In this document: positions 3,800-36,584 of the stretch, piece after piece | Layout: the number at the start of each line of letters is the position of its first letter | Position numbering within the stretch: the first letter of the stretch is position 1 | From: Lepidodermella squamata | Lineage: Eukaryota; Animalia; Gastrotricha | Length of the DNA stretch: 64,000 bases | NCBI GenBank assembly: GCA_047495785.1 | Contig: JBLDXI010000030.1 | Location: 1,302,001 to 1,366,000, forward strand | Reading direction: 5' to 3' | Made by a program: the position numbers and the translations under genes | Notes under the pieces: generated by a model | Database searches by the model: none | What the model saw: only the letters and a program-made list of their open reading frames with translations | Told to the model about the DNA's origin: nothing

Positions 3800-6700
3800 T
3801 CAGAGATACTCGTTTTCTTGTTTGATCAAAGTAATCTCTAAAATTTTAGCCCGGAGTTGTTTGAAGGAAGGTCTGTCTTCATACGTATGGATCCAGCAGA
3901 TCTTCATGATATCATTGTATCTGCAACAACATGTTCAAGAGAAGAATCGGAATACAAGAAAGAAAAACTAACATTTTATCGGGGCAAGCAGGTGGCTTCG
4001 GCAAGCGAAGACCTTGGCAAACGTGGAAGATCACTTCCATGCCTAGCAATTGATCGTATGGCTCCGATTCACAATCTACCAGATAGGATATACACGTTTC
4101 ATTTTGATGGACCCTTGGGTTCGCTTACTTGTGAACATTTCCCACATAACAACGCCGAAAGACCAAACATCACTCTTGAGGACGAAAATCTTACGCATCA
4201 ATGATTCGGGCGGATGCCATCTAACAGGAATTGCGGATTCATGCTCATCAGACGTTCGATAATAGCAGCCTTCATCGTCTAAAACTCGAGACAATCCAAA
4301 GTCGGAGATCTTGCAGGTCATGCCATCGGATAGCAGTACGTTTCGACAAGCTAAATCTCGATGCATGCAATTCTTGGAATGAAGGTACACCATTCCTTCG
4401 CAAATTTCACTGATGAACCTTAATCTACTTGTTAAGCTAACCTCGGAAACTTTCCTGGTCTTGAGGAAGTCTTTAAGGGTCCCGTTTTTCATGAAAGGTA
4501 CTGTCAGGTGGGGCTGATCGTGAAGAATCGCGATTCCAATTAGCGGAAGGACATTAGGGTGGTCGAAATCTTTCATAACATGAGCTTCTTTGATCAGCCC
4601 AGCTACATCAGCTTTCACATCAGGGCGGATGCTTTTCACAGCTACGTCTTGCTCGTCCTTATCAGGCATTCGAAGTACGGCGCGTTGGACTGTGCCGAAA
4701 TTTCCTGTTCCGAGTATCCCAGTTATCTCGAGCCAATTATTGCTAACGTTGATGCGTTCGATGAGAATGATCAGATCCTGAGCCCCTTCCAGTCCTTCGA
4801 GTAACTTGGTGAAATCAGCAAACGGGACGACGTAGTTAGAATCGTGACTGGTGACGATGCTATCAGCCCTAGTCCTCTTTAACTTTCGATGTCGTAAGAA
4901 TAGGAATCCTAGAAGGGCGAGGACGATTAGGACAATAGTGCCCAGAGTTGAAGTCAAAATGATCAAAAGTTCTTCGCCTGAAATCAAAAATTGAATGGGA
5001 AGAAAAATACAACAGATACCTCACCTGATTCTAGAGATTCATTCTCATTCACTCCTTCGATCACAGCGAAGTAAGGATTGTGGCTGTTATAATTTCTATC
5101 TTCCAAGGAACATCTTGTGATACTCTGAGTTATAATGGAATATATGGCAGCCGTTGTGCCTGATTCATTGGGAACCGTTGGGATTTTTAGCTCAGTTTCA
5201 ATGGCCGAAATAGGAATGAGCGTATTCTGAATTCGATCGAATAAGCTCAGCGTTTTACTGAAGTCAGGATCAATAGCCGTTATTGTTATATGGCTACTGT
5301 TGACTCGATAGTTGACCTCGTAGCCTAGGAAGGTGATTCCAGCCAACGTTAAGCTATCGATTCCATCTGGCAGAGATGGCTGTAAGATATCAACTCGATC
5401 AGTCCTTATCCTTAGCCCACCAAATCCGAACATGAGGACATTCAAAAAAGCGGCTGCGGTATATGTGTGGCCAATAGCCGAATTTTTCGTATCAGTAACA
5501 TTCCTCCAGATGAAAAATGGCTCGGAATAGTAGTTTTCGAGCAAACTCTCAAAATCCTTTCGACCAGCTGCCATTGAAGCTTTCGTAGCAAGTTGCATTT
5601 CCAGAATAGCTTTTACAGCCAAAGAAGTCCCAGAAATGTTCACTTCTTTGATCCCAGCTTCGAAGGTTCTGCCAAATTTGCGGTTGTAATTCTGGAAAAT
5701 CAAATAAAAAATATTCCATTTTTTGCTGATCTTCACTTACGTCAATATCGTTCCTCAAGAGTTCTGGAGGAGCCTGTTCCAGGAATCTCCCCGAAAAGTT
5801 GTACCCAACTGGGAAATGAGCCAAGAGGACATCGGCCTGAGAAATGGCATCACTCATATTGAAACCATCGAATTGATAGTTGATCTTTTTAGAATTGTCG
5901 TACGGGAATTTCAAACGCATCGATTTGTCAAGCTGATCTTCTTCGATAGGGTCTCTATTCAAACAATTCAAGTACTGAGTGAAGTGAACAGCCAGTTGAC
6001 CAAGAGTCAGTGTCAATAGGCTGTTTATTTGGTTCTGGTGCAGCTCATCAGTCCCACTGACATTGTGGATCGACAAAAAGGTGCTGTTTTGATCATTGTC
6101 CTCTAATTTCTTTTCGAATGACACTGCGGCATTCTTGTTGATAGAAAATATAGAATCGGTTTTAATCTTTGATCTAGTGATGAAGTACAGCATTCGAGAG
6201 GTTAAGCTGAACAAGCTTTCACTGAACATCGCTTGAACGGCGCAATGTGAACACCATGTAGGCTGAGCCTTAGCTTTGTTCAACGTTTCGTAGGGGTAGG
6301 GGATATTCCTGCCTTGGGTGATGGAGCGGCTGAGGACTATTTGGCCTGCAATATCAGGATGAAGCCATGCAACTGGTTGGAATAGGAAAAGTTCTTGCTC
6401 CACAGTATGATGGCCGCCAAATTGACGCCGGGTGGACCCACGGCCGAGACCACAAGCGGAAGCTCCATAGAAACTTCCGTAAAGATCATACGAGTCCCTG
6501 TTGAATTGCTCCACAAAACCGAGCTGACTGAAGACCTGGTAGTAGGCGGACTGAATTGCTTCATTTAGTAACAACGCGCGAGGTCCTGCCATATTTGTGT
6601 TGATTTTTCAATAATTTCAAGTAATTATTTACCTGATACGCTGACGGATCCAGTATTGATTAATTTTTGCCATTTCTGAACACTTAATTTCACAAACAGA

Positions 6701-7605
6701 TAAGGATCCGCGTTTGCCGTCACGACCCCACGCCGATACTCATCCAACGCAATGGCATTATCATAGTCTATTGTAAGGAGGGAAACAAGCACATCCGTGA
6801 CCGTTGTGTCCAATTTGACATCGAAAAACCGGCCGTCGCCTATCGCGAAGCGACACTTGACGTAAGCCGTCGCGTATGGAACGCTGAAGCCAGGATGTTC
6901 CAAGTAAAACGTGATTTTCCTATTGCCGAAAAATCGAGTCTCAAATTTGATTTAAATTACGAACTGTCACTACCAGGTATCACTCTGTTCTCCCATGGTT
7001 TTTGAGATGTTAACGTTTTTAGAAAAATATTTATCGCTCAACGCTTCGCGGTAGATTTCGCTTTGATAAAACCTGACATTGGAACTCTGGAGTAACGTCC
7101 CTCCAGTGATGCTGATAGTGTGGAAGTAAGTTCGCTTGTACTCGTAATGACATCCGTAAATTGAGCGAATTACCAATCCTCGCTTAGTCCAAATCACTTC
7201 CTGCCAGACGCCAATTGTAGGATAGAAACGGAACTTTCTGTCCGCAATAGGATCTACCACACTGTCTACTTCAATTTTCGAGATTTTGAACACTGCATAG
7301 TTCGGCAGGGGTGTTCTTTGAATGTATCCATCGTCTTCCCTGTGAAAATACGCCGAAAGGTAAATTGACTCCTGAAAAAAATAGTTCACTATCCTGAGCT
7401 AACAAGAGCATTCGAGTCGTAATGCTCTTACGTTGTAGACAACAGTTCCTATTAATCCAGTTGACAACTCGGGAAGCAAATCGGCATTTTTAGTGTCAAA
7501 ATCGGATCCAGCTTCGATGAAATCTGTAAAATGCTCCTCTAGCAATTGCCCAGCCACTGTTAACATGCATATAATGCCGAGATTTAAGATTTCCTCAACA
7601 AACAT
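3800..7605 (-). CDS. GH65/PGGHG-ectodomain receptor tyrosine kinase, copy 1 (8 exons)
   Basis: Signal exon ~7605-7432. Ectodomain exons contain LLPELSTGLIGTVVY, GASACGLGRG, SGTDELH, ISQADVLLAHFP, SEPFFIWRN and AAAFLNVLMFGFGGLRI. TM + kinase exon ~4978-4130 contains GTGNFG, VAVK, HRDLACRN, DFG and SDVWSFG. Two short 3' exons end ...QENEYL*. Confidence 0.9.
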
Positions 7606-7829: not shown

Positions 7830-10800
7830 TCACAGATGAACGCTAACTACATGCTGAGACATTGAGCCACAGATGTGAAGAAGTTCACCAAATGTTGGCC
7901 GAGCTTTCGGCTCCTGAGACCAGCATGCCAGCATTACTTGATACAATTGATCCGGGCAGATTTCAGGCTTGGGCAGGCGACATCCGTGTGATAGATGAAT
8001 AGCTATCTCCATGGGTTGCAAATCAGAATACGGCTCCATCTTGCAATCTAAAAGTTATTTAAAATACATGTAAAATACAGAGCCAACGCCTAACCTGTAA
8101 AAATTTCCCACATTACTACGCCGAAGGACCAGACGTCACTTTTCAACATAAAAATTCGACGGACAAGCGATTCAGGCGGGTGCCATCGAACTGGGACTCG
8201 GTACTCGGTAGCCTCTAAACATTGATAGAAGCCATCTTCACACTCCACTGTTCGAGACAAGCCGAAGTCTGAAATCTTCGCCGTTAAATCGTCAGACAGC
8301 AAAACGTTTCGGCAAGCTAAATCGCGATGCATGCAGTTTTTCTCAGAAAGATACGCCATTCCAGAGCAAATCTCCTGTATGAAACGAAGCCTATCTTCTA
8401 AAGTCATAGAACCAGCGTTGGAGACCACGTAGTCGTTCAACGTGCCCGACGACATGAAAGGAACGATTAAATTCGGCTGGTCTCTCAGAATCGCAATTCC
8501 GATAAGGGGTAGCACGTTAGGATGGCTGAAGTCCTTCATTACATAAGCTTCTTTGATCAACCCAGCCACATCAGCTTTCACATCAGGTCGGATGCTTTTC
8601 ACGGCTACAAGTTGTTCCGGCTCATTTGGCAGGCGAAGAACGGCTTTTTGAACTGCCCCGAAATTGCCAGTCCCAATGAGATCAGTGATTTCAAGCCAAT
8701 CCGCGCAGACATTGATGCGTTCTACCAGAATTATAAGATCTTCCGCTCCTTCTAAACCTTTGAGTAACTTTGTGTAATCCGCGAAAGGTTGGAAGTAGTT
8801 ATTTCCGTCTACAATTCTTTGTTGAGTTTCTGGATCTTTTTTCTTGCGACGAAGCAGGATAAACGCCGAGATTGCTAAAGATATCACAACAGTGACCGTC
8901 AAAGTTGAGGCGAGAATGACTTCGAGATCATCTGAAAAATTAAGCCTAGTGATACTATAGCTTAAGGTTTCTGGCTTTACCTTTTGTATCTGGGTCTTCA
9001 ACAATATAGTAAGGATTGTGGCTGTTGTAATTCCTGTCCTCCAAAGCGCATTTTGTGCTAGACTCCGTGATGAAGCTGTAGATCGCAGCAGTTGTCATTG
9101 AATCTTTTTCTGGTAGAGGTAAAGTGATCGAGCTATCTTTCAGCTTGATGTATTTCCCGTTTAAACGGTCATAGACAGTGGTTATTGCGATGAATTCAGC
9201 TTTCATCGATGAAACAGTAATCGTCTTCTCTGTCACTTCATAATCGACCTTGAATTCGTAGAAAAAGGTGATCTGTTTGAAACTCATTGTCTTTATGCCT
9301 TTGGGCAGGGATGGTCGCAGGATATCGATACGGCACACGCGCAGCCTTAGGCCACCAAATCCGGAGATTATCACGTTGAGAAAAGCTCCAGCCGTATAGG
9401 TATGCCCTATTGCTGCCGTGTTCGCGTCCGAAATGTTTCTCCATACGAAAAATGGCCCGGAATTGTATTCGGACATTAACATTTCGAAATCGCATCTGCC
9501 CGATTCAATGAATTGGTTAGTCCCGAGCTGCATTTCAAGAATGGCTTTGATCGCTAGGGAAGTTGCCGGAATCGAAGCTTTCCCACTAGTGTTCGCGAAG
9601 TTCGTAGTGTATTTCTAAGCAATTCAATAATTTAGTAAAAATTGTCTATCCTTTAACATGAAAAACCTGAATGTCATTGTAAAGAATTTGAAAAGGCGCT
9701 TGCTCTAGGAATTTTCCTGAAAAATTGTAACCAATAGGAAAGTGAGTCAGCAAAACTTCCGCTTGGCTGATCGCGTCTCCAAAATTGAACCCTTCGAATT
9801 CTCGATTGCTGGTCTCCACTTTGTCATATGGGAAGTAAAATCTCCTGGTGTTGTCAGCCGCCTCCGGGTCTACGAAATCTTGATTTACACAGGTGAGAAA
9901 CTCGTCGAAATGCAGAGCAAGAGACGCTAGAATGTTCGTCAACAAATTATTGCTCTCATTGCGATGCAGCTCATCTGGACCACAGACCTCGTTGATAGAC
10001 ACGTAGTCGTGGTCATCCGTCAGTTTCGGTGCTAGGAATGCCGAGGTCATTCCGCTGATTTGCTTCAACCGCTGGAAGCTAACTTTACCCCTTGTGGCTG
10101 CGTAGAAGATTCTGGTGGACAAGGAAAGCAATATCTCGCTGTACAACGACTGGTTATAGCAGTGATCACACCACGTAGGTGGCACCACCCATGTGTCAGC
10201 AATTTCGAACGCCATCGGCTCCACGTGTTGAAGCACACGCCAACGATGAAGGATAAGGCTCTCCATTGATGTTGGCTGTATGAAAGCGAACAGAGGCGGG
10301 ATGAAGAATTCGGAATCGGGGGTCACGTGACCGCCGAAGTTTCGCCTCGTAGCACCTCTTCCGAGGCCACACGCCGAGATTCCCGCGAAATCGCTATCGG
10401 TTCCCAAAGAATTTGTTACAGGATTAAAACGAAGAATTGACGGCATTTGGCTGTAGATATTGTACATTGCAGAACGGGCCATTCTATTCAACTTTACATC
10501 ATCTTCACAGCAGATGTAGATTTACGACTTGAGGTGTATATACTTACCTGCAAAGTTAATGAAAGTTCCACCCGCTCTGTTCTGCCAGGCTTTCAAATGT
10601 TGTTCCAAGGCTATGTAAGGCTTTTCCCGCGGGAAAAGATCGAATTCATCGCGAGCGTTTGCGTAACTTCGATCCATGGTCAGCCAAGATACAGTTTTAT
10701 CCATGTAGGTCGCTTCCAACGCCATTTCAAAATTCAAAGACGCGTTTGAAGCGAATATGTCGATTTCATTCACGTTTGAAATCTGATTTTTGAACCTCAC

Positions 10801-11503
10801 GGTATGATACCTGCAATCGTAAATTCAACATGAATCTGTGAAGATAATCAAAAGACTTGCATTGACTGAAGAACTTCATCGTAAACCGCCGATTCTACAG
10901 AAATATCTTGTTCCCTAGCTATTTGTTTGTAAAAATCCGGCTGACGAATTGTCAGTTTGGATCCAATATGAATGGTTGAAGTTTCAACAACTAACACATT
11001 GAAAAACGTCCGTGAGTAGTAGTAATTACATCCCGATATCAGACGCAGGCGCAACCCACTCACTGTGCGAATCTCCTGCTCAAACAAGCCGATTTCATAG
11101 TAGAATTTGAACGTTTCCCTCGTTATCCCTTCATTTGTGTCATTCAGATGAACAGATGCAATGCGGAAAACGGCATAGTTTGGCAAACGAACCCGCCTTA
11201 TAAACCCATCTGAAGACGATACAAACGAGAGCGAATGATAAATTGATTCCTGTATCAAAGGAAAGAGGTTTGAAAATCGCTGTTGAAGCTTCAAATTATA
11301 AAAAAACCCACATTATAAGGAGTCGTACCGATGACTCCGGATGATAGCTCTGGCAATGAATCATGGTCAGGGAGTTCATCGATCTCGATGAAGTCGATTT
11401 TCTCAAGTTGGTCAGTGATAGTGAAACCTAAGCCTGGTTCGTTGAAAATCGAGGCAGCGAGTGTGAAAAGACAGATGGAAGCTATCGCAGAAATTATGGA
11501 CAT
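7830..11503 (-). CDS. GH65/PGGHG-ectodomain receptor tyrosine kinase, copy 2 (most divergent, 7 exons)
   Basis: ORF pieces 11291-11503 (signal), 10848-11294, 10522-10800, 9646-10491 (CGPDELH, ISQAEVLL), 8955-9533, 8090-9004 (TM + kinase) and 7830-8039 (kinase C-lobe) are separated by short GT-AG introns. Confidence 0.9.
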
Positions 11504-12339: not shown

Positions 12340-15300
12340 TTACAAAACTTGGCTGTAGTCACCGCAGTTCAATCGATCCAGTTTCTCTTGAAGCTCCAGA
12401 AACGAGGGCCTTTCCTCGTAGTTTTCCTGCCAGCATTTTGCAATGATGTCATCATATCTATGCATCATATCATCATATCAAAGTTCGATTGATCTTTAGT
12501 TCTTAGTTAAACAAAAGTCACATACATTTTATCTGGGCAAGTTGAGGGTTTAGAGAGACGATATCCTTGAACGATGTGAACAATCACCTCCATAGCTTGA
12601 AGTTGTCCGTATGGTTCTTGTTCGCAATCTGGAAGGAAAATTCGAACGAGTTACACTATCAAAACATGAAATATTATAGTATTACTTGTGAATATTTCCC
12701 ACATGATTACTCCGAACGACCAAACATCGCTTTTTAGCACGTAAACGTGTCTTATCAGCGATTCAGGTGGATGCCAACGAACGGGCACGGCATAATCGTT
12801 TTCATTCGCTGTTCGATAGTAGTCATCCCCATCTTCGAGAACCCGGGACAATCCGAAATCAGATATTTTAGCTGTAAAATCCTCCGCCAACAAAACATTT
12901 CGGCATGCCAGGTCTCGATGCATGCAATTCTTGTCATGTAGATAAACCATTCCGGCGCATATCTGGCTTGAGAAACGAAGTCTGTCGCCGAAGCTCACCT
13001 CGTCGAGCCGTCTTGGTTTCAAAAACTCTTTCAAAGTCCCATTTGGCATGAAAGGGACGATAAGATTCGGCTGCTCGTTAAGGATCGCGATTCCGATGAG
13101 GGGCAGGACGTTAGGGTGGTTGAAATCTTTCATAACATAAGCTTCTTTGATTAGTCCAACAACATCAGCCTTCACGTCAGGGCGGATGCTTTTCACGGCT
13201 ACTTCTTGCTCGTCCTTTTCGGGCATACGAAGGATAGCTCGTTGGACCGTTCCAAAATGTCCTGCTCCAAGGATCCCTTTTATCTCGAGCCAGTCATTGC
13301 AAACGTTGATTCGTTCGATGAGAATGACTAGATCCTGAGCGCCTTCGATTCCTTCAATCAGTTTTGTGAAATCGGCAAAAGGTACAACATAGTTTCCATC
13401 CCCATGGGCTTGAGACGTGTTTGTTGTCGGAACATGTTTCTTTCGATAACGAAGGAACAAGATTATAAAAGCTGCAACTACAACAACGAACAAGGCACCG
13501 AAAACTGAATACAAAATTGTAGCCAAATTATCCTCTGAAATTCAAACTTCGATCATAAATTGCGATTGAGGCCCAAAGAGTTTTACCGTCTGGCGATTCG
13601 TTTTGTTCAACCATATCTACCACAGTGTAGTAAGGGTTGTGGCTGTTGAAGTTCCTGTCTTCCAATTGGCAAGTCGAAACGGTATTAACGGTTAACGAGT
13701 AAATAGCTGCTGTTGTATCTGACGTCTCGGCTACCGTAGGAATTTCGAGTACTATTGTGTCGGATGCAATATGGAGATACCGGTTAGCAATTCGGCTATA
13801 CAATCTCGTGACTTTCTTGAAATCTTGGGACAGTAACGGTATGGTAATATGAGTTCGATTTATGTGGTAGTCCATTTCATAGCCTAAAACATGAATTTGC
13901 GATAGAGTTAGGCTGTCTATACCATCTGGTAGCGACGGTTGAAGAATATCGACTCGATTGGGTCTCATCCGAAGTCCTCCGAATCCGAACATGAGGACAT
14001 TCAGGAATGCAGCCGCGGTATATGTGTGACCAATAGCCGCATTTTCCTCGTCAGTGATGTTCCTCCAGATGAAAAATGGCTCGGAATGGTAGTTTTCGAG
14101 CAAAGTTTCAAAGTCTTTCCGACCAGCTGCCATTGAAGCTTTCGTAGCAAGCTGCATTTCAAGAATAGCTTTGACAGCCAAAGAGGTGCCGGGAATTTCC
14201 ACTTGCTTGATCCCAGCTTCATAAGTTCTCCCAAAGCGGCAGTTGAAATTCTAAATATTTGAACCTCATGTTATGCAGTACCGGGCTAAAATACATACGT
14301 CAATATCATTTCTCAAGAGACCTGGTGGAGCCTGTTCTAGGAATTTCCCGGAAAAGTTGTACCCAACTGGGAAATGAGTCAAGAGAACATCGGCCTGAGA
14401 AATAGCATCACTCGATTCGAAACCGTCGAACTGAGAGTGGGTCTGCGTAACGTTGTCGTACGGAAATTTTAGGCGCTTGGACATGTCCAGCAGCTCGTCG
14501 TCGATCGGATTTCCAATGCTGCAGGCCAAATACTGAGTAAAGTGAACTGCGAGTTGCCCGAGGACGTTGTTTAGCAAATTGTCAGACTGATTATGGTGGA
14601 GTTCATCAGGTCCAGTTACGCCCCTGATCGAAATGAAGTCGGTATCGCTGCTCTTACCGGTTTTCATCTTTGTAGCAAATTTCTCATTCAGAGGTTTGTT
14701 GATTTGCAACAAATGTATAGGTGTGATGGATTTTACCCTTTTGATGAAATATAGCAGTCGGGAGGCGAAACTGAAGAGCCCATCGCTGTATATTCCTTGT
14801 TGCGAGCAATGAGGACACCATGTTGCTGCGACGGCAACTCTTGTAGAAGTTTCATAGGGCACGTTGACGTTTGACGTGAAGGTATTCGATGAGCGAAGTA
14901 ACATAAGTTGTTCGGCCAAATCAGGAATCAGCCATGCAACAGGTTGGAATAGAAATATTTCTTGCTCCACGGTTTGGCGGCCACCGAATTGACGTCGCGA
15001 AGAGCCGCGCCCGAGGCCGCACGCAGAAGCTCCGTTGAAAGACTCATACACACCATCGCTAGTTTTCAAGCCATCTAAATCCACAGCGATCTGGCTAAAG
15101 ACTTGATAGTAAGCTGATCGAATAGCTCTGTTGATAACAGCTTCTCGCGGACCTAAAGAAGATCACAAATTTTATGAGGGTAGAATGATTCAACGAGAAC
15201 GAAGGAGAAAGCCGTTGTTAAAACTAGAATTAAAGTTTGATGGATCATCAGATGAGACCAACCTTTCACTGTGATACTCCCAGTATCAATCAAGCTCTGC

Positions 15301-16258
15301 CATTTTGTGACTTGGTAATCGATCAGTTCATTAGCTGGTAGCGCCATCAACCTTGCAAATTCATCACGAACGATCTTTTCATCGTGATCAATTGTCTGAC
15401 AGGCCATCGTGGATTCTGTAACTTCACCGGTGATCGCAATCTCGAGGTAAGCTTTCCCTGAGAGAGCGCTGTGGGCACTGTGGGCATAAATCCTTGTATT
15501 TCTTTTGCCGAAGGCTGAATCAGGTACGACGATGTCGACAAATCTATGAAACCATTTGGAAAACTGTTTTCAACAATTGAAATCAGTCTCCTTACGTAGC
15601 ATTGCAGCAGCCAACCTCCTTTAAACTTCTCGTCAACTTGACTCCATATCGATCTTGATAGACTTCATCACTCAAAAGGCCGGCATATTTCTTATCCTGA
15701 TGGAACCGAATGGTAGATCCAATGAAACGTTTGTCAGCTTCAATTGAAACAGCGTGGAAATAGGTTCGCTTGTACAGAAAGCTGCATCCGTAATATGAGC
15801 TGATGTTGATACCTCGTTGGGTCGTGATCAGCTCTTGCCAAATTCCGACTGTTTGATAGAAACGATACTTTCTATCAGTGATAATTTCGGATTCGTTGTC
15901 AACTTCAATCGATTCGACTTTGAATACGGCATAGTTAGGCAGGGGCAGACGTCTGACGTAACCAAAATCGTTGTAAAATTGCGTTGATAGGTAAATCGAC
16001 TCCTGAATAATTGGGAAGAGTCGACTCCTTAAAATGTAAGACTTGAAATCAAGTTTAACAAACGCTGTAGACGACGGTTCCTATGATGCTTGATGCAAGC
16101 TCTGGCAGCAAGTCTGGATCGTCGAAATTAAAATGTGGCCCGACTTCTTTGAATTCGATTCGCTTCAACATTTCCGGTATAGATTGGTTTGAAGCAGTAA
16201 CAATGAATGGAGTAAATAGTAGAAGTGTAAGAATAAACATCAATCCCGAGAGATGCAT
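12340..16258 (-). CDS. GH65/PGGHG-ectodomain receptor tyrosine kinase, copy 3
   Basis: Same 8-exon structure: signal MHLSGLMFILTLLLF, GVTGPDELH, TM, intact kinase motifs; ends ...CGDYSQVL*. Confidence 0.9.
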
Positions 16259-18570: not shown

Positions 18571-21500
18571 TCACAGTACTTGACTAAGGTCGACACAGTA
18601 CATTCGATCTAGGTTTTCTTTAAGCTCCTCAAACGAGGGTCTTTCTTCATAGTTCTGCTGCCAGCATTTTGAAATGATATCGTCATATCTAAACGAAACC
18701 ATGGAAATGAAGTTGTCCCTTAAAAAGGCAAAGTTAACTTACAATTTATCAGGGCAAGCCGCAGGTTTAGATAAACGATAGCCGTGGCTGATGTGAACAA
18801 TCACTTCCATAGCTTGAAGTTCCTCGTACGGTTCGTGTTCACAATCTGTTGGAGAAATTCTCTTCAAAAACAAGATCGAAACTGAAAACAGGATAATTAC
18901 TTGTGAATATTTCCCACATGATTACAGCGAACGACCAAACGTCACTTTTTAGCACGTAAACGTGTCTTATCAGCGATTCAGGTGGATGCCAACGGACTGG
19001 GACAGCATAATCGCTTTCATTCGCTGTTCGGTAGTAGTCATCATCATCCTCGAGAACTCGGGACATTCCGAAATCAGATATTTTAGCCGTAAAATCCTCG
19101 GCCAACAAAACGTTGCGGCAAGCCAGGTCTCGATGCATGCAATTCTTATCGTGTAGATAGACCATCCCGGCACATATCTGGGTGGAGAAACGAAGCCTGT
19201 CTCCTAAACTCACCTCGTCAAGCCGTTTTGGTTTCAAAAACTCCTTCAACGTCCCATTTGGCATAAAAGGGACGATAATATTCGGCTGTTCGTGTAGGAT
19301 CGCGATTCCAATGAGGGGTAGAACGTTAGGGTGGTTGAAATCTTTCATAACATAGGCTTCTTTGATGAGACCAACAACATCTGCCTTCACGTCAGGGCGG
19401 ATGCTTTTCACAGCTACTTCTTGCTCGTCCTTATCAGGCATTCGAAGTATGGCATGTTGAACAGTGCCAAAGTGCCCGGCTCCAAGGATCCCTTTTATCT
19501 CGAGCCAATCATTGCAAACGTTGATACGTTCAATGAGAATGACCAGATCCTGAGCACCTTCGATTCCTTCGATAAGTTTTGTGAAATCGGCAAAAGGCAC
19601 AACGTAGTTTGCTTCTCCGCTGGAAGGAAACGTGTTTGATATTTTTGCAGCATTCTTTCGAGACCGAATGTACAAGATCAGGAGAACCGCTACTATAACA
19701 ACGACTAAAGCACTGAAAGTTGACAATAAAATTACAACCAAGTTATCATCTGTAAAAATTGAGAATTCGATCAAACAAGGGGAATTAGGCCTCAATATTC
19801 TTGCCTTCTGGCGATTCGTTTTCATCAACAATGTCGACTAGGGTGTAGTAAGGATTGTGGCTGTTGTAGTTCCTATCATTCAACGGACATAGGGAGCTAT
19901 CGCTAGCTATGAATGAGTAGATTGCCGCTGTCGTGTCTGACGTCTCGGCAACCGTAGGAATTTCCAGCTCTACCTTATCGGATGCGAGATCGATATACCG
20001 CTTCCCAATTCGACTGTATAGGCTCGTGGTTTTTCTGAATTTCGCGTTCAGATACGGAATGGTGATATGAGTTCGATTTATATGATAGTCGACATTATAG
20101 CCCAAAAGTTCGATATCGAACAGCGAGAGGCTCTCGATACCATCGGGTAGCGATGGTGGAAGAATGTCGACTCGATTGTGTCTTATTCTCAGCCCTCCAA
20201 ATCCGAACATCAGGACATTCAGGAAAGCAGCGGCAGTATATGTGTGGCCAATTGCCGCATTTTCCTCATCAGTGACGTTTCTCCAGATGAAAAATGGCTC
20301 AGAATGGTAATTTTCTAGCAGATTTTCAAAGTCTGCCATTGACGCTTTCGTAGCAAGCTGCATTTCAAGAATAGCTTTGACAGCCAAAGAGGTGCCAGGA
20401 ATTTCCACTTGCTTGACCCCAGCTCTGAATGTTCTGCCGAAGAGGCGATGATAATTCTTAAAATATTCCATTATATTTTGCCTTGAATCTGATGACAACT
20501 TACGTCAATATCGTTTCTCAAGAGGTCTGGAGGAGCCTGTTCCAGGAATCTCCCTGAAAAATTGTACCCAACTGGAAAATGAGCCAAGAGGACATCGGCC
20601 TGCGAAATCGCATCATTCAAATCGAACCCATCGAACTGATAGTGGGCCTTCATAACGTTGTTGAACGGAAATTTCAGGCGCATCGATTTTTCCAGCAGGG
20701 CCTCATCGATCTCATCTCTATTAATACAGGCCAAGTACTGGGTAAAGTGAACCCCCAGTTGCCCTACAATATTGGTTAGCAAATTGTCAGACTGATTATG
20801 GTGGAGTTCATCAGGACCAGCGACGCCGTAGATCGAGATGTACTCATTATTACCGCTGTTCTTTGATATCTCTTTCGCAAGATGTTTGTTTATATAGACA
20901 TTATTTGCTCTGCACAAATCAACAGCGCTCATGTTCCCCCGTTTGATAAAGTATAGCATGCGAGAGGTGAAACTGAAGAACCCATCAATGTAGATGCCTT
21001 GCTGCGAGCAACGAGGGCACCATGTTGATGAAACTCCAACTCTGTTCACTATTTCATAGGGGTTCAAATTTTGTTCGTTAAAGGTTGTAGGGCGGAGCAG
21101 CATGAGTTGCTCGGCCAAGTCAGGCCTCAGCCACGCAACAGGTTGGAATAGAAATATTTCCTGCTCCACAGTTTGGCGGCCACCGAATTGACGCCGCGAA
21201 GATCCGCGGCCAAGGCCGCACGCAGAAGCTCCGTGAAATGTGTCATAAAGCCCCGTTTTAGGGTCAAGTTTCGATTCCGCGATGTTGAAATCGATCTGGC
21301 TGAAGACTTGATAGTAGGCTGATCGAATGGCTCGGTTTATAACATCTTCGCGTGGCCCTTGTATCAACAGTTCAAAATGACAGTTCTTTGTTGAGAAAAG
21401 AAAGTATAAAAATGATACCAACCTTTCACGCTGACGTGGCCAGATTTAATCCTGACATCCCAGTCATCAACTTGAATTCTCATCAGCAAATTAGATCGCA

Positions 21501-22403
21501 AAACCGGATTCATCATGCCAGTGAACTCAGTCTTAGCTGCATCTGAATCGACATCGATGGTCTGAAAGGCCACAAAGGTTTCCGTAACTCCAGCTCTAAT
21601 CTCAATGTCGAAATAGGATTGGCCAGTTAGGGCAAATGTGCTATTCACATATATCGATACGGTTTGAGTATGGTCGGAGAGAGTATTCGGTACAATGATG
21701 GACACGTATCTAGTTAGAGAGATTCACACACCTGTTACAAGGCTCATATTACTTACGATGCATTGTAGCCGGCCACGTGGAATTCTTTGTCAATAAAGAG
21801 ATATTGATATCGATCTCGGAGGACTTCTTCACTAAGAAGCTCGTCGTATTTTTTATCGCGATGAAATCGAATGGTCGAGCCGATAGAATTGTTGCCGGCT
21901 GATATCGAAACAGAATGGAAATAGGTTCGTTTGTACCGAAAGCTGCATCCGTGATATGAACTGATGTTGATCCCTCGTTGAGTCGTAATCAACTCTTGCC
22001 AAATTCCGATTGCTTGGTAGAAACGATACTTTCTGTCAGTAATATTTTCAAATTCATTATCAATTTCGATCGATTCAACTTTGAATACTGCATAGTTAGG
22101 CACGGGCAGTCTTCTGACGTAACCAGAATCGTTGTAAAAAAGCGATGACAGGTAAATCGATTCCTAGAACAACTTTAAGATGCAATAATTTATCAATCAA
22201 TTTTTACGAACGTTATAGATGACAGTTCCGATCCTGCCCGATGCCAGCTCTGGCAGCAAGTCTGTGTCGTCAACATTTAAATTCGACCCGACTTCCGTGT
22301 AATCGCTTCCAGCTAAAACTTGCGCTATCGTTCTATCAGCAGTAACGATCGACGAAGTTCGCAGCTGAAATGTAAGTATCAATATCAATTCTGAAAGTTT
22401 CAT
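18571..22403 (-). CDS. GH65/PGGHG-ectodomain receptor tyrosine kinase, copy 4
   Basis: Starts MKLSELILILTFQL; GVAGPDELH; 4-aa in-frame deletion (ASMADFE vs ASMAAGRKDFE); kinase with DFGM and SFAV variants; ends ...CVDLSQVL*. Confidence 0.88.
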
Positions 22404-26104: not shown

Positions 26105-26210
26105 AAAAAGCCCAGATTGTAAGGAGTCGTACTAATGACTCCGGATGATAGCGCCAGGAGTGAATCATGGCCAAGGAGATCATTCAACTCGATGAAGTCG
26201 ATATTCTCTA
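26105..26210 (-). pseudogene. Relic of exon 1 of RTK copy 2
   Basis: taaggagtcgtactaatgactccggatgatagc...gaatcatgg...tcgatgaagtcgat matches ~11310-11405. Confidence 0.85.
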
Positions 26211-26621
26211 GTGTGTGATCGCGTGGAATGAAAAATCGGGAATATCGCATAAGTTACAGACATATTAAACTAAAAGATAACTTCCATTGAAAAATATATT
26301 AAGCGCAACCAAACGCTCGTTACTACAGAAAAAGGTGCCTAAGGAATAATTATATTAGCTGAAACTGGCAGAAAATCAGTAAACCCGAAAAAACCCGAAA
26401 ATTTCCCACGGAGAATATACGCTATTTTCTGTAAAATGTTCGGGTCCCCCCGTGGTTGAACGCTTCGAGCAGGGACAGTCTCACGCGTCCCCGCCATCTT
26501 CGACGTGAAAGCGAGATAACGCCAAATTATTTTGAAAAAGCGTGATTGGCCAAATGATTGGCATCAATTCTTAAAACGATATATCAGTTGCATTAAAAGA
26601 CGAAATGTTGTGTCATATGTG

Positions 26622-29600
26622 TTACAAAACTTGGCTGTAATCGCCGCAAGTCAATCGATCAAGCTTCTCGCTGAGCTCATGAAACGAGGGCCTCTCCTCG
26701 AAATTTTGCTGCCAGCATTTCGAAACAATGTCGTCATATCTATACAAAATTGTATAATTTTGAGTGTTCTTCAATTAAGCAAAGTTCACCTACATTCTAT
26801 CCGGGCAAGTTGAGGGTTTAGAGAGACGATACCCCTGGCTGATGTGAACAATGACCTCCATAGCTTGAAGTTCATCGTACGGTTCGTGTTCGCAATCTGG
26901 AAGTGAGATTAGAACGAATTACCCAATCAAACTGTAAATTTAGTTTTACTGGTGAAAATTTCCCACATAATTACTCCGAACGACCAAACATCACTCTTCA
27001 GTACGTACACTCGTCTAATTAGTGATTCAGGTGGATGCCAACGAACTGGGACGGCATATTCGTTCTCATCAGCAGATTTGTAGTAGTCATCCCCATCCTC
27101 AAGAACTCGCGACAGTCCGAAATCCGATATTTTAGCCGTAAAATCATCGGCCAACAAAACGTTGCGGCAGGCCAGATCTCGATGCATGCAATTTTTAGAA
27201 TGAAGGTAGACCATCCCGGCACATATCTGGCTGGAGAAACGAATTCTATCGCCGAAACTAACCTCGTCCAGCCTTCTTGGTTTCAAAAACTCTTTCAGCG
27301 TCCCATTAGGCATGAATGGTACAATAAGATTCGGCTGATCGTTGAGGATCGCGATCCCAATGAGGGGTAGAACGTTAGGGTGGTGGAAATCCTTCATAAC
27401 ATGGGCTTCCTTGATCAGACCAACAACGTCGGCCTTGACGTCAGGGCGGATGCTTTTCACGGCTATTTCTTGCTCGTCCTTTTCGGGCATTCGAAGCACA
27501 GCTCGTTGGACAGTGCCGAAGTGGCCGGCTCCAAGGATGCCTTTTATCTCAAGCCAATCGTTGCAAACGTTGATACGTTCAATGAGAATGACTAGATCTT
27601 GAGCACCTTCGATTCCTTCGATGAGTTTGGTAAAATCGGCAAATGGTACAACGTAGTTTCCATCCCCATTGGCTTGAGATGTGTTTGTAGTCTGAACATG
27701 TTTCTTTCGATAACGAAGGAACAGGATTATAAAAGCTGCAACTACAACAACGAACAAGGCACCGAAAACTGAAGACAAAATTGTAGCCAGATTATCCCCT
27801 GAAATTCAAACTTCGATATAAATTGGGATTGAGGACAAAAGAGTTTTACCTTCTGGCAGTTCGTTCTTCTCAACAATGTCGACCACGGTGTAGTAAGGAT
27901 TGTGGCTGTTGTGGTTCCTATCATCCAACGGACATGCGGAGATTGTGTTCACTATGAATGAGTAGATAGCCGCTGTCGTGTCTGACGTCTCAGGAACAGT
28001 AGGAATTTCCAGCATTACTCTATCGCTCAGAAGTTTGATATACCTATTCGCAATTCGGCTATACAAGCTCGTCGTTTTTCTGAAATCCACAGACAGATGC
28101 GGTATGGTGATATGAGTTCGATTAATGTGATAATCGATTTTATAGCCTAACAAAAATATCTGCGATAGCGTTAGGCTTTCGATACCGTCCGGTAAAGATG
28201 GCTGGAGAATATCGACTCGATTGGGTCTTATCCTTAGTCCCGCGAATCCGAACATGAGGACATTCAGGAAAGCAGCTGCGGTATATGTATGGCCTGTAGC
28301 CGCATTTTCCTCATCGGTGACGTTTCTCCAGATGAAAAATGGCTCGGAATGGTAGTTTTCTAGCAGTTTTTCAAAGTCCTTCCGGCCCGCTGCCATCGAA
28401 GCTTTCGTAGCTAGTTGCATCTCAAGAATAGCTTTGACAGCTAAAGAGGTGCCAGGAATTTCCACTTGTTTTATGCCTGCTTCATAGCTTCTCCCGAAGC
28501 GGCGGTTGTAATTCTGTAAGTATCTGAAATTGATTCATGTCGAATGAAATTGCGACTTACGTCAATATCGTTTCTCACGAGTTCTGGGGGCGCCTGTTCG
28601 AGGAATCTCCCAGAAAAGTTGTACCCAACTGGGAAATGAGCCAATAGGACATCGGCCTGGGAAATCGCATCATCTAAATTGAAGCCGTCGAACTGATAGT
28701 TAGTCTTCGTAACGTTGTCGTACGGAAATTTTAGGCGCATCGATTTGTCCAACAAGTCGTCATCGATTGGTTCTCCAAAGATGCAGTCCAAATACTCGGT
28801 GAAGTGAACCCCGAGTTGCCCGAGAATATTGGTTAACAAATTGTCAGACTGATTACGGTGGAGTTCATCGGGTCCAGTTACGCCCTTGACTGAAATGAAT
28901 TCAGTATCGCCGATACTACTTTCTTTTATCTGTTTAATGAAATTATCATTCAAACGCGTGTTTACATTCCAAAATTGATAAGTTGAGACTGGTTTCGCCC
29001 TTTCGATGAAGTAAAGCATACGAGATGCGATACTGAAGAACCCATCACTGTAGATAGCTTGCTTCGAGCAATGAGAACACCATGTTGCTGCAACTCCAAC
29101 TCTCGCAGAAGTTTCATACGGCACGCTGACGTTTGTCATTAAGGTATTTGACGAGCGAAGCAGCATCATTTGCTTGGCAAAGGTAGGGAAAAACCACGCA
29201 ACGGGTTGGAACAGAAATATTTCCTGGTCTACAGTTTGGCGGCCTCCGAATTGACGCCGCGAAGATCCACGACCCAGGCCACACGCAGACGCTCCGTTGA
29301 AAGATTCATATTGACTGTCGGAATCAGTTTTCGAGTCACCCGAGCCCATAGCGATCTGGGTGAAGACTTGATAGGAAGCTGATCGAATGGCTCTGTTGAT
29401 AACATCTGCTCGTGGACCTAAAGAACATTGCGAAAACAATGATTTATTCAACGAACTCCTCTTTCCTTTAACTTTGCTGTATTTCTGGATGCCCAAGCGT
29501 CACTCCTTCACGCTACTAATAGTGCTTTGAGTCTTCTTCCGTCCACAATTTAGAGCCCAAGGAATTATTAGATAAGACCAACCTTTCACGCTGATACTTC

Positions 29601-30561
29601 CAGTTTGAATCAAGCGCTTCGATTTTTCGACTTGGTAATTAATCAGCTCATCAGGTCGCAGCGCCGGGTTCATCAGCTTCGCGAACTCTTCACGAGCCAT
29701 ACTTTCATCGTGATCAATGGTCTGAAATGCCACAATGATTTCCGTAACTTCACCGGTGATCTCAATGTCGAAGTAAGCTTTCCCCGTGGTGTGGACATAC
29801 ATCTGTGTAATTGTCTTGCTGCGAATTGCACCCGGTACGATGATGCGGACATATCTATGAGACCAATGTGAAAACTGATTGAAAATTTGAATCTGCTTCC
29901 TTACGTAACATTGCAGCAGCCAACTTCTTGAAAACCTCTAGTCAAATTCACTTCGTATCGTTCTCGATAGGCGTCATCACTCAAAAGACCGGCGTATTTC
30001 TTATCCTGGTGAAATCGAATGGTCGAGCCGATGAAACGTTTGTCAGCTTCAATTGAAACAGCATGGAAATAGGTTCGCTTGTACAGGATACTGCAGCCGT
30101 GATATGAGCTGATGTTGATACCGCGTTTAGTCTTAATCAACTCTCGCCAAATTCCGATTGTTTGGTAGAAACTATACTTTCTTTCAGTGATAATTTCAGA
30201 TTCGTTGTTAACATCGATCGATTCGACTTTGAATACGGCGTAGTTAGGCAGAGGCAGTCGTCTGATGTAACCCGAATCGTTGTAAAATTGCGTTGACAGG
30301 TAAATCGATTCCTGAAAAATTTGGGAAAAGCTTGACAATTGACGACCTTAAGAACTGAAGGCAAACGCTGTAGATAACGGTTCCGACTATGCTTGTTGCA
30401 AGTTCTGGCAGTAAGTCTGTATCTTCGAGATTAAAATCGGACCCGACTTCCGTGTAATCGATTCCCTTCAAAGATTGCGGTATCGATTGGTTTAAAGCTG
30501 TAACTATCGATGGCGTAAGCATTCGAAGTGTAAGAATCAACGTTAATCCGACGGAATGCAT
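26622..30561 (-). CDS. GH65/PGGHG-ectodomain receptor tyrosine kinase, copy 5
   Basis: Signal MHSVGLTLILTL; GRQTVDQE; GVTGPDELH; TM nearly identical to copy 3; intact kinase; ends ...CGDYSQVL*. Confidence 0.9.
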
Positions 30562-32668: not shown

Positions 32669-35600
32669 TCACAAAACTTGACTGAATTCCGTACAGTGTA
32701 ATCGATCTAGGATTTCTTTAAGCTCCTCAAACGAGGGTCTATCTTCGTAGTTCTGCTGCCAGCATTTTGCAATAATGTTGTCGTATCTAAAAAAAAGCTA
32801 TCGGAATAACGCCGTCCCTTACAAAAGGCAAGGTCACTTACAGTTCTTCAGGGCAAGCTGCGGGTTTAGAGAGACGATAACCGTGACTGATGTGAACAAT
32901 GACCTCCATAGCTTGAAGTTCATCGTACGGTTCGTGTTCGCAATCTGTTGGAAACATGCTCTTCGAATTCAGGCTCAAAATTGATAAAATCACAATTACT
33001 TGTAAATATTTCCCACATGATTACTCCGAACGACCAAACATCACTCTTCAGTACGTAGACTCGTCTAATTAGCGATTCAGGTGGATGCCAACGAACTGGG
33101 ACGGCATAATCATTTTCATTCGCAGTTTTGTAGTAATCATCCCCATCCTCAAGAACTCGCGACAGTCCGAAGTCCGATATCTTAGCTGTGAAATCCTCGG
33201 CTAACAAAACATTTCGGCAAGCCAGGTCTCGATGCATGCAATTCTTGTCATGTAGATAGACCATCCCGGCACATATCTGGCTGGAGAAACGAATTCTGTC
33301 GCCGAAACTCACCTCATCTAGCCGTCTTGGTTTCAAAAACTCTTTCAGCGTCCCGTTAGACATGAATGGAACGATAAGATTCGGCTGATCGTTGAGGATC
33401 GCGATTCCGATGAGTGGTAGTACATTCGGGTGGCTGAAGTCCTTCATAACATGGGCTTCTTTGATCAGACCAACAACGTCAGCTTTAACGTCAGGTCGGA
33501 TGCTTTTCACGGCTACTTCTTGCTCGTCCTTTTCGGGCATTCGAAGCACAGCTCGTTGGACAGTTCCAAAGTGGCCGGCTCCAAGGATGCCTTTTATCTC
33601 AAGCCAATCATTGCAAACGTTGATTCGCTCAATGAGAATGACCAGATCCTGAGAACCTTCAATTCCTTCGATAAGTTTTGTAAAATCAGCGAAAGGGACT
33701 ACGTAGTTTCCTTCTCCGTTTGCGTGAAAAGTGTTTGAAAATTTGGCAGCTCTCTTTCGAGACCGAAGGTATAATGTCAAGAGAATCGCTACTATTATAG
33801 CGACCAAAGCACTGAAAACTGACAACAAAATGACAGCCAAGTTATCCTCTGCATTAGACAATCTAATCAAGCAAGTTTAATAATGCCACAATATTCTTGC
33901 CTTCTTTGGATTCATTTTCATCAGCAATGTCGACCAGCGAGTAGTATGGATTGTGGCTGTTGATGTTCCTATCCTCCAACGGACATTGGGAACTACCGCT
34001 AGCTATGAACGAGTAAATAGCCGCTGTTGTATCCGACGTCTCGGCTACCGTAGGAATTTCCAACACAATCATATCAGAATCGAGACGGATATACCGGTTC
34101 CCAATTCTACTGTACAATATTGTGATTTTTCTAAAATTCGGGGCCAGATACGGAACAGTAATATGAGTTCGATTCAAATGGTAGTCGACATTATAGCCTA
34201 AAATTTCGATTTCCGACAGCGTTAGGCTGTCTATACCATCTGGTAGCGATGGTTGGAGAATATCGACTCGATTGGGTCTTATCCTCAGTCCTGCATATCC
34301 GAACATGAGGACATTCAAAAAAGCTGCTGCGGTATAAGTATGGCCAATAGCCGCATTTTCCTCATCAGTGACATTTCTCCAAATGAAAAAAGGCTCAGAG
34401 TGGTAGTTTTCGAGTAGATTCTCAAAGTCCTTGCGACCTGCTGCCATTGAAGTTTTCGTTGCGAGTTGCATCTCAAGAATAGCTTTGACAGCCAAAGAGG
34501 TGCCAGGAATTTCCACTTGCTTCACACCAGCTTCATAAGTCCTTCCAAAGCGGCGGTTGTAATTCTGAAATCAAATACAATTGATGTAGAATGAAATTGC
34601 GACTCACTCGATATCGTAAATTTGTATTTAAAAATATTTTCGCTGAAATTACTGAAATTTACCTAGATGGCAACTTACATCAATATCATTTCTCAAACGT
34701 TCTGGAGGGGCCTGTTCCAAGAATTTTCCCGAAAAATTGTATCCCACTGGAAAATGGGCTAAGAGAACATCGGCTTGAGAAATGGCATCATTCAAATTGA
34801 ATCCATCGCACTGATAATGGGTCTTCGTAACGTTGTCGTAAGGAAATCTTAAGCGCATCGACTTTTCCAGCAGGGCCTCGTCTATCGGTTCACGATTAGT
34901 GCAGGCTAAGTACTGGGTAAAGTGAACCCCAAGTTGCCCGAGAATATTGGTTAGCAAATTGTCAGACTGATTACGATGGAGTTCATCGGGTCCAGTTACG
35001 CCGTAGATCGAGATGTACCCATCATTACCATTATTCTTTGAGATCTCTCTCGCAAGATTTTCCTTTATAATATCGGAATTTCTCCTCCACACATTTTCAG
35101 GGTTCATTTTCCCTCGCTTGATGAAGTATAGCATGCGAGAGGCGAAGCTAAAGAAGCCATCGCTGTAGATGCCTTGCTGCGAGCAATGTGGACACCATGT
35201 TGATGAAACTCCAACTGTGTTCACAATTTCATAGGGCTTCAGATCTTGCTCACTACTAGTTGTAGGGCGCAGCAGCATGAGTTGCTCGGCCAAGTCTGGC
35301 ACCAACCACGCAACAGGTTGGAACAGAAATATTTCCTGCTCCACAGTTTGGCGGCCACCGAATTGACGCCGCGAAGATCCACGACCAAGGCCACAGGCAG
35401 AAGCTCCGTGAAATGTCTTATAAAGCACGTTAGTGCCAGGGTTTGATCCCGCGAAGTTAATATCGATTTGGCTAAATACTTGATAGTAGGCTGATCGAAT
35501 GGCTCGGTTGATTACATCTTCGCGTGGACCTAGTATAAAAAGTAAACAAATATCCGAATTGTTTTGAAAAGAAATAATAAGTGATACCAACCGTTCACGC

Positions 35601-36584
35601 TGAGATAGCCTGATTGAATTAGCTTCTGCCATTTGTCAACCTGATTTCCAACCAGCATATTAGCTCGCAAAGCGGGATTCACTAGGCCAGCGAACTCATT
35701 CTTAGCTGCATCTGCATCATCGATATCGATAGTCTGAAGTGCAACAATAGTTTCCGTAACTCCATCGGTAATCTCAATGTCGAAATAGGATTTGCCAGTT
35801 AGGGCGAATGTGCTATTCACATATATCGATACGATCTGAGTGGAGCCAGAAAATGGATTCGGCACGAAGATATTCACGTATCTAGTAAGAGGCGTTTACA
35901 GAACCTGTTACAGGGCTCTTATTTCTTACGATGCATTGTAGCCGGCCACCAGCTGGAATTCTGAATGAAGCAGGAGTTGATATCGATCTCGGTAGACATC
36001 TTCACTCAGAAGCGCATCGTATTTCTTATCCCGGTGAAATCGAATCGTAGAGCCGATGAAATGCTCGTCGGCTGATATTGAAACAGCGTGGAAATAGGTT
36101 CGCTTGTACCAAAAGCTACAGAAGTGATATGAGCTGATGTTTATACCTCGTTGAGTCGTAATCAACTCCTGCCAAATTCCGATTGTTTGATAGAAACGAT
36201 AATTTCTATCAGTGATATTTTCGAATCGCCCATCTACTTCAATCGATTCGATTTTGAATACAGCATAGTTAGGCAGGGGCAGTCGCCTGATGTAACCAGA
36301 ATCGTTGTGAAAAAGCGATGAAAAGTAAATCGATTCCTAGAGCAGCTATGAGATGCAATAATAAATCAACCAATTTCGAAAATTACGTTATAGATGACTG
36401 TTCCTATCCTGCCTGATGTAAGCTCTGGCAGCAAGTCTGCATCGTCAACTTTAAATTTCGACCCGACTTCCGTGTAATCGATTCCATCCAAAATTTGCGC
36501 TATCGATTTGTCTTCGGCTGCAACGATCGATGAAGTTCGCAACAGTAGGAGTGTAAGTATGAGTATCAATTCTGAAAGTTTCAT
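32669..36584 (-). CDS. GH65/PGGHG-ectodomain receptor tyrosine kinase, copy 6
   Basis: Signal MKLSELILILTLLLL; GVTGPDELH; TM similar to copy 4; intact kinase; ends ...CTEFSQVL*. Confidence 0.9.

Follow-up and report, generated by a model that had tools for sequence, protein, structure and literature searches.

Six tandem genes of the gastrotrich Lepidodermella squamata predict receptor tyrosine kinases with a GH65-derived, probably non-hydrolysing ectodomain

Glycosidase folds that have lost catalysis are known as receptor parts. Klotho and beta-Klotho are GH1-derived pseudo-glycosidase co-receptors of fibroblast growth factor (FGF) receptors, and in tobacco CHRK1, a chitinase-related receptor-like kinase, as in the GH18 chitinase-like lectins, a dead glycoside hydrolase serves as ectodomain or lectin. 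We know of no described animal receptor tyrosine kinase (RTK) with a glycosidase-fold ectodomain. Here we analyse 64,000 nucleotides from the gastrotrich Lepidodermella squamata (GenBank assembly GCA_047495785.1, contig JBLDXI010000030.1, positions 1,302,001 to 1,366,000; hereafter the window), the minus strand of which carries, between 3.8 and 36.6 kb, six tandem copies of one gene. In all six models a hydrophobic N-terminus or signal peptide is followed by an ectodomain of about 780 residues resembling PGGHG, the GH65 alpha-glucosidase that trims collagen sugars, by one transmembrane helix and by an intact tyrosine kinase. The best explanation of the locus as a whole, to which we assign a probability of about 75%, is a single-pass RTK with a PGGHG-derived ectodomain that would bind a ligand without hydrolysing it, the ligand probably being other than the ancestral one.

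The closest described enzymes are human PGGHG (ATHL1; EC 3.2.1.107; PDB 9sd4-9sd8), the best match to the ectodomain in both sequence and fold, and FjGH65A, an alpha-1,2-glucosidase of Flavobacterium johnsoniae (PDB 7fe3). Mutagenesis of the human enzyme identified D301, E430 and E574 as crucial carboxylates (review, PMC11012932), in line with the three required carboxylates named in a first-pass annotation of this region made from the sequence alone; PDB entries 9sd5 and 9sd6 are the E574Q and E430Q/E574Q mutants. In FjGH65A the acid is E472 and the base E616, the E616Q variant has <0.1% activity, and the base Glu is conserved across GH65 hydrolases (FjGH65A paper). According to the GH65 review, the Tyr that hydrogen-bonds the base is conserved without exception in GH65 hydrolases and phosphorylases, and the subsite -1 residues W, D, K and Q throughout GH65; these four together hydrogen-bond every glucose hydroxyl, with the Trp and Lys contacting OH3/OH4 and OH1/OH2. 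Human numbering was taken through the PDB chain (offset +1), so that D301 corresponds to the first Asp of FWDQD, E430 to the Glu of PDE and E574 to that of WTE; FjGH65A residues were mapped through the 7fe3 chain (offset +3), with their roles taken from the GH65 review.

The copies were found by tblastn with open reading frame (ORF) pieces from the region that the first-pass annotation had singled out. Spliced models were assembled from stop-free ORF segments, GT/GC-AG sites and the conservation of junction peptides across copies. All six are open, with 7-8 exons and introns of 45-165 nt, every one GT-AG save intron 5 of copies 4 and 6, and their products are 45-82% identical in pairwise comparison. 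The copies, with their motifs at the positions of FWDQD, the general acid, KQAD and, where given, the base, are as follows.

3800..7605, minus strand: copy 1 (c1), 1147 aa, the lowest-coordinate copy, same architecture; TVEQE / GTDE / SQAD / IWRNV
7830..11503, minus strand: copy 2 (c2), 1120 aa, 7 exons; the most divergent copy, with ~46% identity to the others; TPDSE / GPDE / SQAE / VWRNI
12340..16258, minus strand: copy 3 (c3), 1156 aa, 8 exons; holds the region first noted, 14050-15000
18571..22403, minus strand: copy 4 (c4), 1153 aa; TVEQE / GPDE / SQAD; GC-AG donor at intron 5
26622..30561, minus strand: copy 5 (c5), 1154 aa; TVDQE / GPDE / SQAD / IWRNV
32669..36584, minus strand: copy 6 (c6), 1159 aa; TVEQE / GPDE / SQAD; GC-AG donor at intron 5

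We use c3 as the reference. Its product comprises a signal peptide, the ectodomain (residues ~23-800), the transmembrane helix (~803-831) and the tyrosine kinase (~882-1156), and its exons are arranged as follows.

16258-16064, 16002-15596, 15543-15263, 15152-14299, 14250-13587, 13534-12686, 12628-12526 and 12457-12340, minus strand: exons 1 to 8 of c3
14299..15152, minus strand: exon 4, helices one to ten of the (alpha/alpha)6 barrel, with the Y-to-F, FWD-to-TVE, acid PDE and KQ-to-SQ positions
13587..14250, minus strand: exon 5, which completes the barrel with its last helices, including the former base position, and adds the C-terminal beta domain
12340..13534, minus strand: exons 6-8, transmembrane helix, juxtamembrane segment and a tyrosine kinase that lacks none of the catalytic motifs

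The first-pass annotation had read FWDQD as changed to TVEQE, TVDQE or TPDSE, the acid motif as kept (GTDE in c1, GPDE in c2-c6), KQAD as changed to SQAD or SQAE, and [IV]WRN[VI] at the base position in all six. Each of these states was recovered at the place given: TVEQE belongs to c1, c3, c4 and c6, TVDQE to c5 and TPDSE to c2, while SQAD occurs in five copies and SQAE in c2. For the base region, a profile search against PDB, a MAFFT alignment with 43 PGGHG-like representatives and an hhalign profile-profile comparison agree on the catalytic residues and set WRN against the WTE of PGGHG without a gap, anchored by EPF..W upstream and by a common Asp and an FL..xxFGxxGxR block downstream. The base E574 is thereby replaced by Asn in six of six copies and in their closest database relative, the metagenomic protein P0001 described below, against Glu in 41/41 canonical representatives. 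The base-partner Tyr (column 289), present in 39 of the 41, is Phe in all six copies and in P0001. In c3 the residues in question lie at the following positions.

14053..14061, minus strand: N643-I-T, within F-I-W-R-N-I-T, with N643 at 14059-14061; equivalent to human E574 and FjGH65A E616
14986..14988, minus strand: F350, equivalent to FjGH65A Y337, the Tyr that hydrogen-bonds the catalytic base
14602..14604, minus strand: E478, the retained general acid, equivalent to human E430 and FjGH65A E472; Lys in P0001
14965..14970, minus strand: V356-E357, within TVEQE, with E357 at 14965-14967; equivalent to human W300-D301 and FjGH65A W343-D344
14395..14400, minus strand: S546-Q547, within SQAD; equivalent to FjGH65A K538-Q539
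14026..14028, minus strand: H654, equivalent to FjGH65A F625, the site of the phosphate-binding His in GH65 phosphorylases

The general acid of GH65 is retained, with Glu at E430 in every copy; the D301 position carries Asp in c2 and c5 and Glu in the remaining four. Of the three PGGHG carboxylates, then, the set is broken at E574, and the combination of base Glu and Tyr partner that marks the GH65 hydrolases (PGGHG, acid trehalase, kojibiose hydrolase) is absent from all six copies. A Glu from a neighbouring residue, such as those in VTDEE, had been named beforehand as a candidate base that would overturn the pseudo-enzyme claim. An EE pair at +4/+5 from the former base occurs only in c3-c6 (TK in c1, AN in c2), so no conserved neighbouring Glu is available to replace the base, and the Asp after WRNxT is not a substitute because it is also present in PGGHG itself. 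With the base Glu changed to Asn and its partner Tyr to Phe in all copies, and with no conserved replacement Glu nearby, the domain is very probably not a GH65 hydrolase. In every copy, and likewise in P0001 and the hemichordate protein P0067 (below), the Asn that has taken the place of the base is part of an N-x-S/T sequon; judging from this motif, an N-glycan on the old active-site floor would be an unusual means to fill or reshape the pocket.

The glucose-holding part of the pocket is altered as well. The subsite -1 Trp (human W300, FjGH65A W343) has become Pro in c2 and Val in the other five copies, the Lys is Ser in all six copies and P0001 (K in 41/41 canonical representatives), and the Gln (FjGH65A Q539) is kept. 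The quartet conserved throughout GH65 is thus incomplete, with W and K replaced in 6/6 and D changed to Glu in 4/6. Among eight reference residues of FjGH65A the copies keep E472, Q539 and a carboxylate at D344, whereas E616, Y337, W343 and K538 are replaced in all six. Elsewhere in the site the +1 Trp is Tyr or Phe, the conserved His364 and Asp368 are replaced, and the +1-subsite Glu of kojibiose enzymes (the Glu of the PWE motif) is kept in 6/6. Two elements are specific to the clade formed by the copies and P0001. One is an 8-residue insertion with an invariant L-E-Q after the SQAD loop, found also in P0001. The other is a basic loop, A-C-G-L-G-R-G-S-S-R-R-Q-F-G-G (c3 residues ~338-352, ~14980-15025), which lies ahead of the altered FWD motif, hardly varies among the six copies and stands in for the canonical S-P-G-G-L..G loop lining the nucleophile side of the pocket.

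These changes extend over the barrel. When conserved columns were defined as those at least 88% identical in the 41 canonical representatives (n=64), only 16/64 were kept in all six copies, and 36 of 50 canonical-conserved barrel columns were changed; K493 and E569, the subsite -1 Lys and the base in the numbering of possum PGGHG (P0003), occur in every canonical representative. The first-pass annotation had proposed a pseudo-enzyme that binds an alpha-1,2-glucoside. The loss of the base and its Tyr supports the pseudo-enzyme well, while the proposed specificity, with the Trp and Lys replaced, finds no support. We regard it as unlikely that a dead enzyme still binds ancestral alpha-1,2-glucosides (collagen Glc-Gal-hydroxylysine, kojibiose) or trehalose as a lectin-like sensor: although the acid Glu, the subsite -1 Gln, a carboxylate at D301 and the +1 Glu of PWE persist, and although PGGHG itself binds glucose in crystals as E574Q and kojibiose as E430Q/E574Q (PDB entry titles), both the Trp and the Lys of subsite -1 are gone from 6/6 copies, the +1 Trp, His364 and Asp368 are replaced, more than two thirds of the conserved barrel columns have changed and an insertion follows the KQ loop. 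Since the canonical glucose contacts are half gone, the pocket suggests that a different glycan or glycoconjugate, or even a non-sugar, is more likely to be the ligand than the ancestral Glc-alpha1,2-Gal/Glc.

A further position bears on whether the domain could have kept some activity. At column 579, where 40/41 canonical representatives have Phe, the six copies and P0001 carry His, and this is where GH65 phosphorylases place their phosphate-binding His. The remainder of the phosphate site of phosphorylases and the transferase (Lys/Arg, Ser-Ser, His) reads Cys, Pro(Ser)-Gly(Ala), His in the copies and so departs from that site. A phosphorylase-like anion site formed through the Arg of the GLGRG loop was considered and rejected, as the phosphate-Lys position is Cys and only the His of the four fits. 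It is improbable, more so than retention of the ancestral ligand, that the domain remains enzymatic through another base (the new His, a Glu of the insertion or a water chain), with a new specificity or a transferase-like reaction. GH65 does include phosphorylases and a transferase besides its hydrolases, all six paralogs keep the acid Glu without exception although P0001 has lost it, and an invariant His sits where phosphorylases bind their nucleophile; against this, the Tyr partner has gone along with the base Glu, three of the four phosphate-site positions are unfilled, the glucose subsite is half replaced, P0001 lacks the acid too, and mutated GH65 bases assayed so far all gave inactive enzymes.

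The catalytic changes are set in a complete PGGHG-type fold. A profile of the six spliced ectodomains and P0001, compared by hhalign with a profile of 40 canonical PGGHG-like proteins, aligned end to end (probability 100%, E 1e-99, 670 columns), with residues 1-767 of c3 covering 1-686 of a 686-aa PGGHG ortholog. The N-terminal beta-sandwich alone scored 98.8% (E 5e-17) and the C-terminal beta domain alone 96.6%. Searched against PDB with phmmer, c3 exon 4 had human PGGHG as its top match (9sd4-9sd8, E 3e-16). The exon encoding the GH65 C-terminal part gave no match in PDB as a single query, and a profile of the six exon-5 translations found PGGHG at E 0.002, with an ungapped EPF..W..D alignment. 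In Pfam, Glyco_hydro_65m lies above the cut-off in c2 and just below it in c3.

Structure prediction, run on c3 exon 4 and on the intronless P0001, is in agreement with the profile comparison. AlphaFold2 modelled c3 exon 4 with a predicted local distance difference test score (pLDDT) of 86.9 and P0001 with pLDDT 80.4 and a predicted template modelling score (pTM) of 0.87. For both, Foldseek ranked human PGGHG structures first, at TM-scores of 0.70-0.74 (0.74 for 9sd7) for exon 4 and 0.82-0.83 for P0001, followed by FjGH65A and GH65 phosphorylases. The ectodomain thus has the parts of a GH65 protein, an N-terminal beta-sandwich, a helical linker, the (alpha/alpha)6 barrel and a C-terminal beta domain, and the three-domain architecture is common to it and PGGHG. 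The copies further resemble human PGGHG in the acid Glu (E430), the subsite -1 Gln and a PA-type (hydrolase-type) loop; they differ in the transmembrane segment and kinase, absent from PGGHG, and identity between them is only ~20%. FjGH65A has the same fold (TM-score 0.67-0.75).

The kinase half appears catalytically competent. Pfam detects PK_Tyr_Ser-Thr in c3 (E 2e-62), and a motif scan found the G-loop, VAVK/IAVK, HRDLACRN and DFG intact in 6/6 copies, with an activation-loop YY pair in five and FY in c2. A hydropathy scan detected exactly one internal hydrophobic stretch per copy, at about residue 800, in c3 as a single hydrophobic 19-mer stretch. With a signal peptide, an ectodomain, a single transmembrane helix and the kinase motifs, the models have the makeup of an RTK. 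The closest solved kinases are MET, TYRO3 and MER (E about 1e-43), and the YY activation loop is common to these MET/TAM (TYRO3, MER) kinases and five of the six copies; their ectodomains, in contrast, are built of Sema/IPT or Ig/FN3 domains unrelated to GH65, and the kinase likeness is no proof of orthology.

The junction of exons 5 and 6 bears on whether the two halves belong together. Consecutive ORFs carry, by Pfam, the GH65 central catalytic domain and then the tyrosine-kinase domain; a homologous exon-5 donor is followed in 6/6 copies by an intron of 47-55 nt and then by the exon with the transmembrane helix. That exon opens directly with the helix and has neither a start codon of its own, nor an upstream ATG, nor a signal sequence, and without splicing the ectodomain ORF would stop after ~5-20 non-conserved codons. 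From this arrangement the GH65 half and the kinase half look like one gene. The two copies with a GC donor carry GCAAGA at the homologous position (c4 intron 5, 19750-19804; c6 intron 5, 33849-33900) where c3 and c5 have GTAAAA; in these sister copies the GC donors are either functional GC-AG introns by inheritance or a common splice-site lesion.

Ratios of nonsynonymous to synonymous substitution rates (dN/dS), estimated pairwise among the younger copies by the Nei-Gojobori method, were lowest in the kinase (0.06-0.12), intermediate in the barrel (0.14-0.23) and the C-terminal domain (0.13-0.24) and highest in the N-terminal part (0.35-0.40). With every domain well below 1 and an open reading frame in each model, purifying selection acts on the ectodomain, and the genes are maintained, not decaying copies. 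It is accordingly very improbable, the least probable of the alternatives weighed here, that the fusion is a gene-model artefact, whether of separate neighbouring GH65-like and kinase genes or of an untranscribed or decaying cluster. The only candidate RNA run shows no splice joints, two models need GC-AG donors, and P0001, the closest relative, stands alone with a hydrophobic tail of its own and no kinase nearby; yet the same exon-5 donor, short intron and transmembrane exon recur in six copies at 45-82% identity, the kinase exon has no ATG or signal upstream, the unspliced ectodomain ORF would run out within a few non-conserved codons, and every exon is open in all copies at low dN/dS.

A full HMMER scan with exon 4 against 1.84 billion representative proteins, which do not include the window's own, gave 130 matches. 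Only one fell below 1e-30, namely P0001 (E 1e-33, 37% identity).

ENA ERZ23486764 scaffold_870, L001:10001-12391: P0001, an unnamed metagenomic protein encoded by a 796-aa intronless GH65-like ORF

P0001 ends in a C-terminal hydrophobic tail, which by its sequence would be a transmembrane or glycosylphosphatidylinositol (GPI) anchor, and no kinase lies within 22 kb. Nearby are ELO, SSF and ankyrin genes whose introns measure ~60 nt, a eukaryote-like setting, so that the scaffold appears to be a eukaryotic contig in the metagenome. P0001 has in common with the copies TP-D, Ser for Lys, W-R-N with the sequon, His for Phe, Phe for Tyr and the insertion after the KQ loop; unlike them it is kinase-less and intronless and has also lost the acid Glu, now Lys, leaving neither catalytic Glu. 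With Lys in place of the acid, catalysis is not what selection keeps in this clade. None of the 130 matches offers space for both GH65 and a kinase: all are at most 871 aa except a 1314-aa snail protein with Pfam GH65 domains only and a 1958-aa protein matched at E 4e-4 over a short stretch only.

In a maximum-likelihood tree from a quick search, P0001 and the six copies form a clade with 100% support on a long stem, (P0001,(c2,(c1,((c3,c5),(c4,c6))))). The placement of this clade among canonical proteins is insecure, its sister being an annelid PGGHG with only 90% support. Because the copies and the kinase-less P0001 form one clade with the same changes, the loss of the base counts once, and the alignment indicates a single, old, inherited event that predates the duplications rather than six events. 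Between copies 5 and 4 lies a further trace of the gene.

26116-26211, minus strand: a lone c2-like first-exon remnant, 72% identity over 32 aa, probably left over from a seventh copy

The base Glu is missing from just two full-length proteins among the remaining 129 representatives.

XP_077992271: P0067, hemichordate Glandiceps talaboti, annotated PGGHG-like; base position Asn
XP_053692205: P0017, mosquito Sabethes cyaneus, annotated PGGHG-like; base position Lys

In both, Phe replaces the base-partner Tyr and the subsite -1 Lys is gone. Membership of the two in the clade of the copies was rejected: they fall on separate branches of the quick tree, and their base losses are therefore independent. 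Their sequences suggest that animals have evolved PGGHG-like pseudo-enzymes on several occasions.

Several observations weigh against a receptor with a re-specified, non-hydrolysing pocket. Columns conserved in the canonical set are invariant among the six copies more often than other barrel columns (28/50 versus 99/298, p 0.0025), but the replaced columns are not significantly more invariant among the paralogs (14/36 versus 99/298, Fisher p 0.58), so that a new, selected pocket is not statistically demonstrated. Candidates for an alternative base do exist: the His that the whole clade carries at the phosphorylase-His position, and the Glu that never varies in the 8-residue insertion. Two of the six models (c4 and c6, at intron 5) depend on a GC-AG intron. 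Finally, the search for RNA runs gave, besides a probable source DNA run, a sole candidate that contained 9% of the sampled words and yielded short contigs with strand-switch artefacts and no splice joints.

Taking these points into account, we propose that the receptor arose as follows. The ectodomain descends from a PGGHG-type GH65 alpha-glucosidase of which all three domains were retained. As the sequence shows, the common ancestor of the clade lost the water-activating half of the active site, the base Glu becoming Asn and its Tyr partner Phe; half of the glucose-holding subsite -1 was rebuilt, with Val or Pro for Trp and Ser for Lys, and the fold survived together with the acid Glu and the Gln of subsite -1. 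Such a domain would no longer hydrolyse alpha-glucosides. It may instead act as a ligand-binding module whose occupancy controls the dimerisation or conformation of a catalytically competent kinase. More tentatively, and at well under even odds, the genes could represent an undescribed class of animal RTK that senses an extracellular glycan or a glycoconjugate of the matrix directly, by means of a re-specified, enzyme-derived GH65 pocket, in which the Asn sequon, the new His and the clade-specific loop would replace the base machinery and the tandem expansion would serve to sample ligands.

By analogy, it is reasonable to place such a receptor in one mechanism class with the dead-glycosidase receptor domains. 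Like the ectodomains described here, Klotho and beta-Klotho are animal cell-surface proteins with glycosidase-fold domains that lack catalytic glutamates and bind ligands for tyrosine-kinase signalling; they differ in having a GH1 TIM barrel and in acting in trans on a separate RTK to which they are not fused. CHRK1 is a plant Ser/Thr receptor-like kinase with a GH18 domain and has no common descent with the GH65 tyrosine kinases of the window. In our literature searches neither a GH65-RTK nor a GH65 pseudo-enzyme turned up, searches for pseudoenzyme glycoside hydrolases combined with receptor kinases returned only plant receptor papers, and no entry with a GH65 and kinase architecture was found among the 1.84 billion representatives of the protein database.

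The remainder of the window holds further elements beyond the cluster.

38120-40586, plus strand: large ORF adjoining the cluster
41672-42310, minus strand: large ORF adjoining the cluster, with a neurotransmitter-gated ion-channel ligand-binding domain
57920-63117, minus strand: ORF run with Helitron_like_N, PIF1 helicase and Pif1 2B domains, by these domains a Helitron Rep/Hel transposase split over several ORFs

For the GH65 family, at least two entries of public proteomes, P0067 and P0017, although annotated PGGHG-like, are without the base and should not be assumed to be glucosidases. If the models of the gastrotrich cluster are transcribed, they would provide a natural example of an enzyme becoming a sensor in which the steps are still readable: the base and its Tyr partner would have been lost first, and these losses are common to the kinase-less, presumably membrane-anchored relative, the kinase would have been fused later, and tandem amplification would then have followed.

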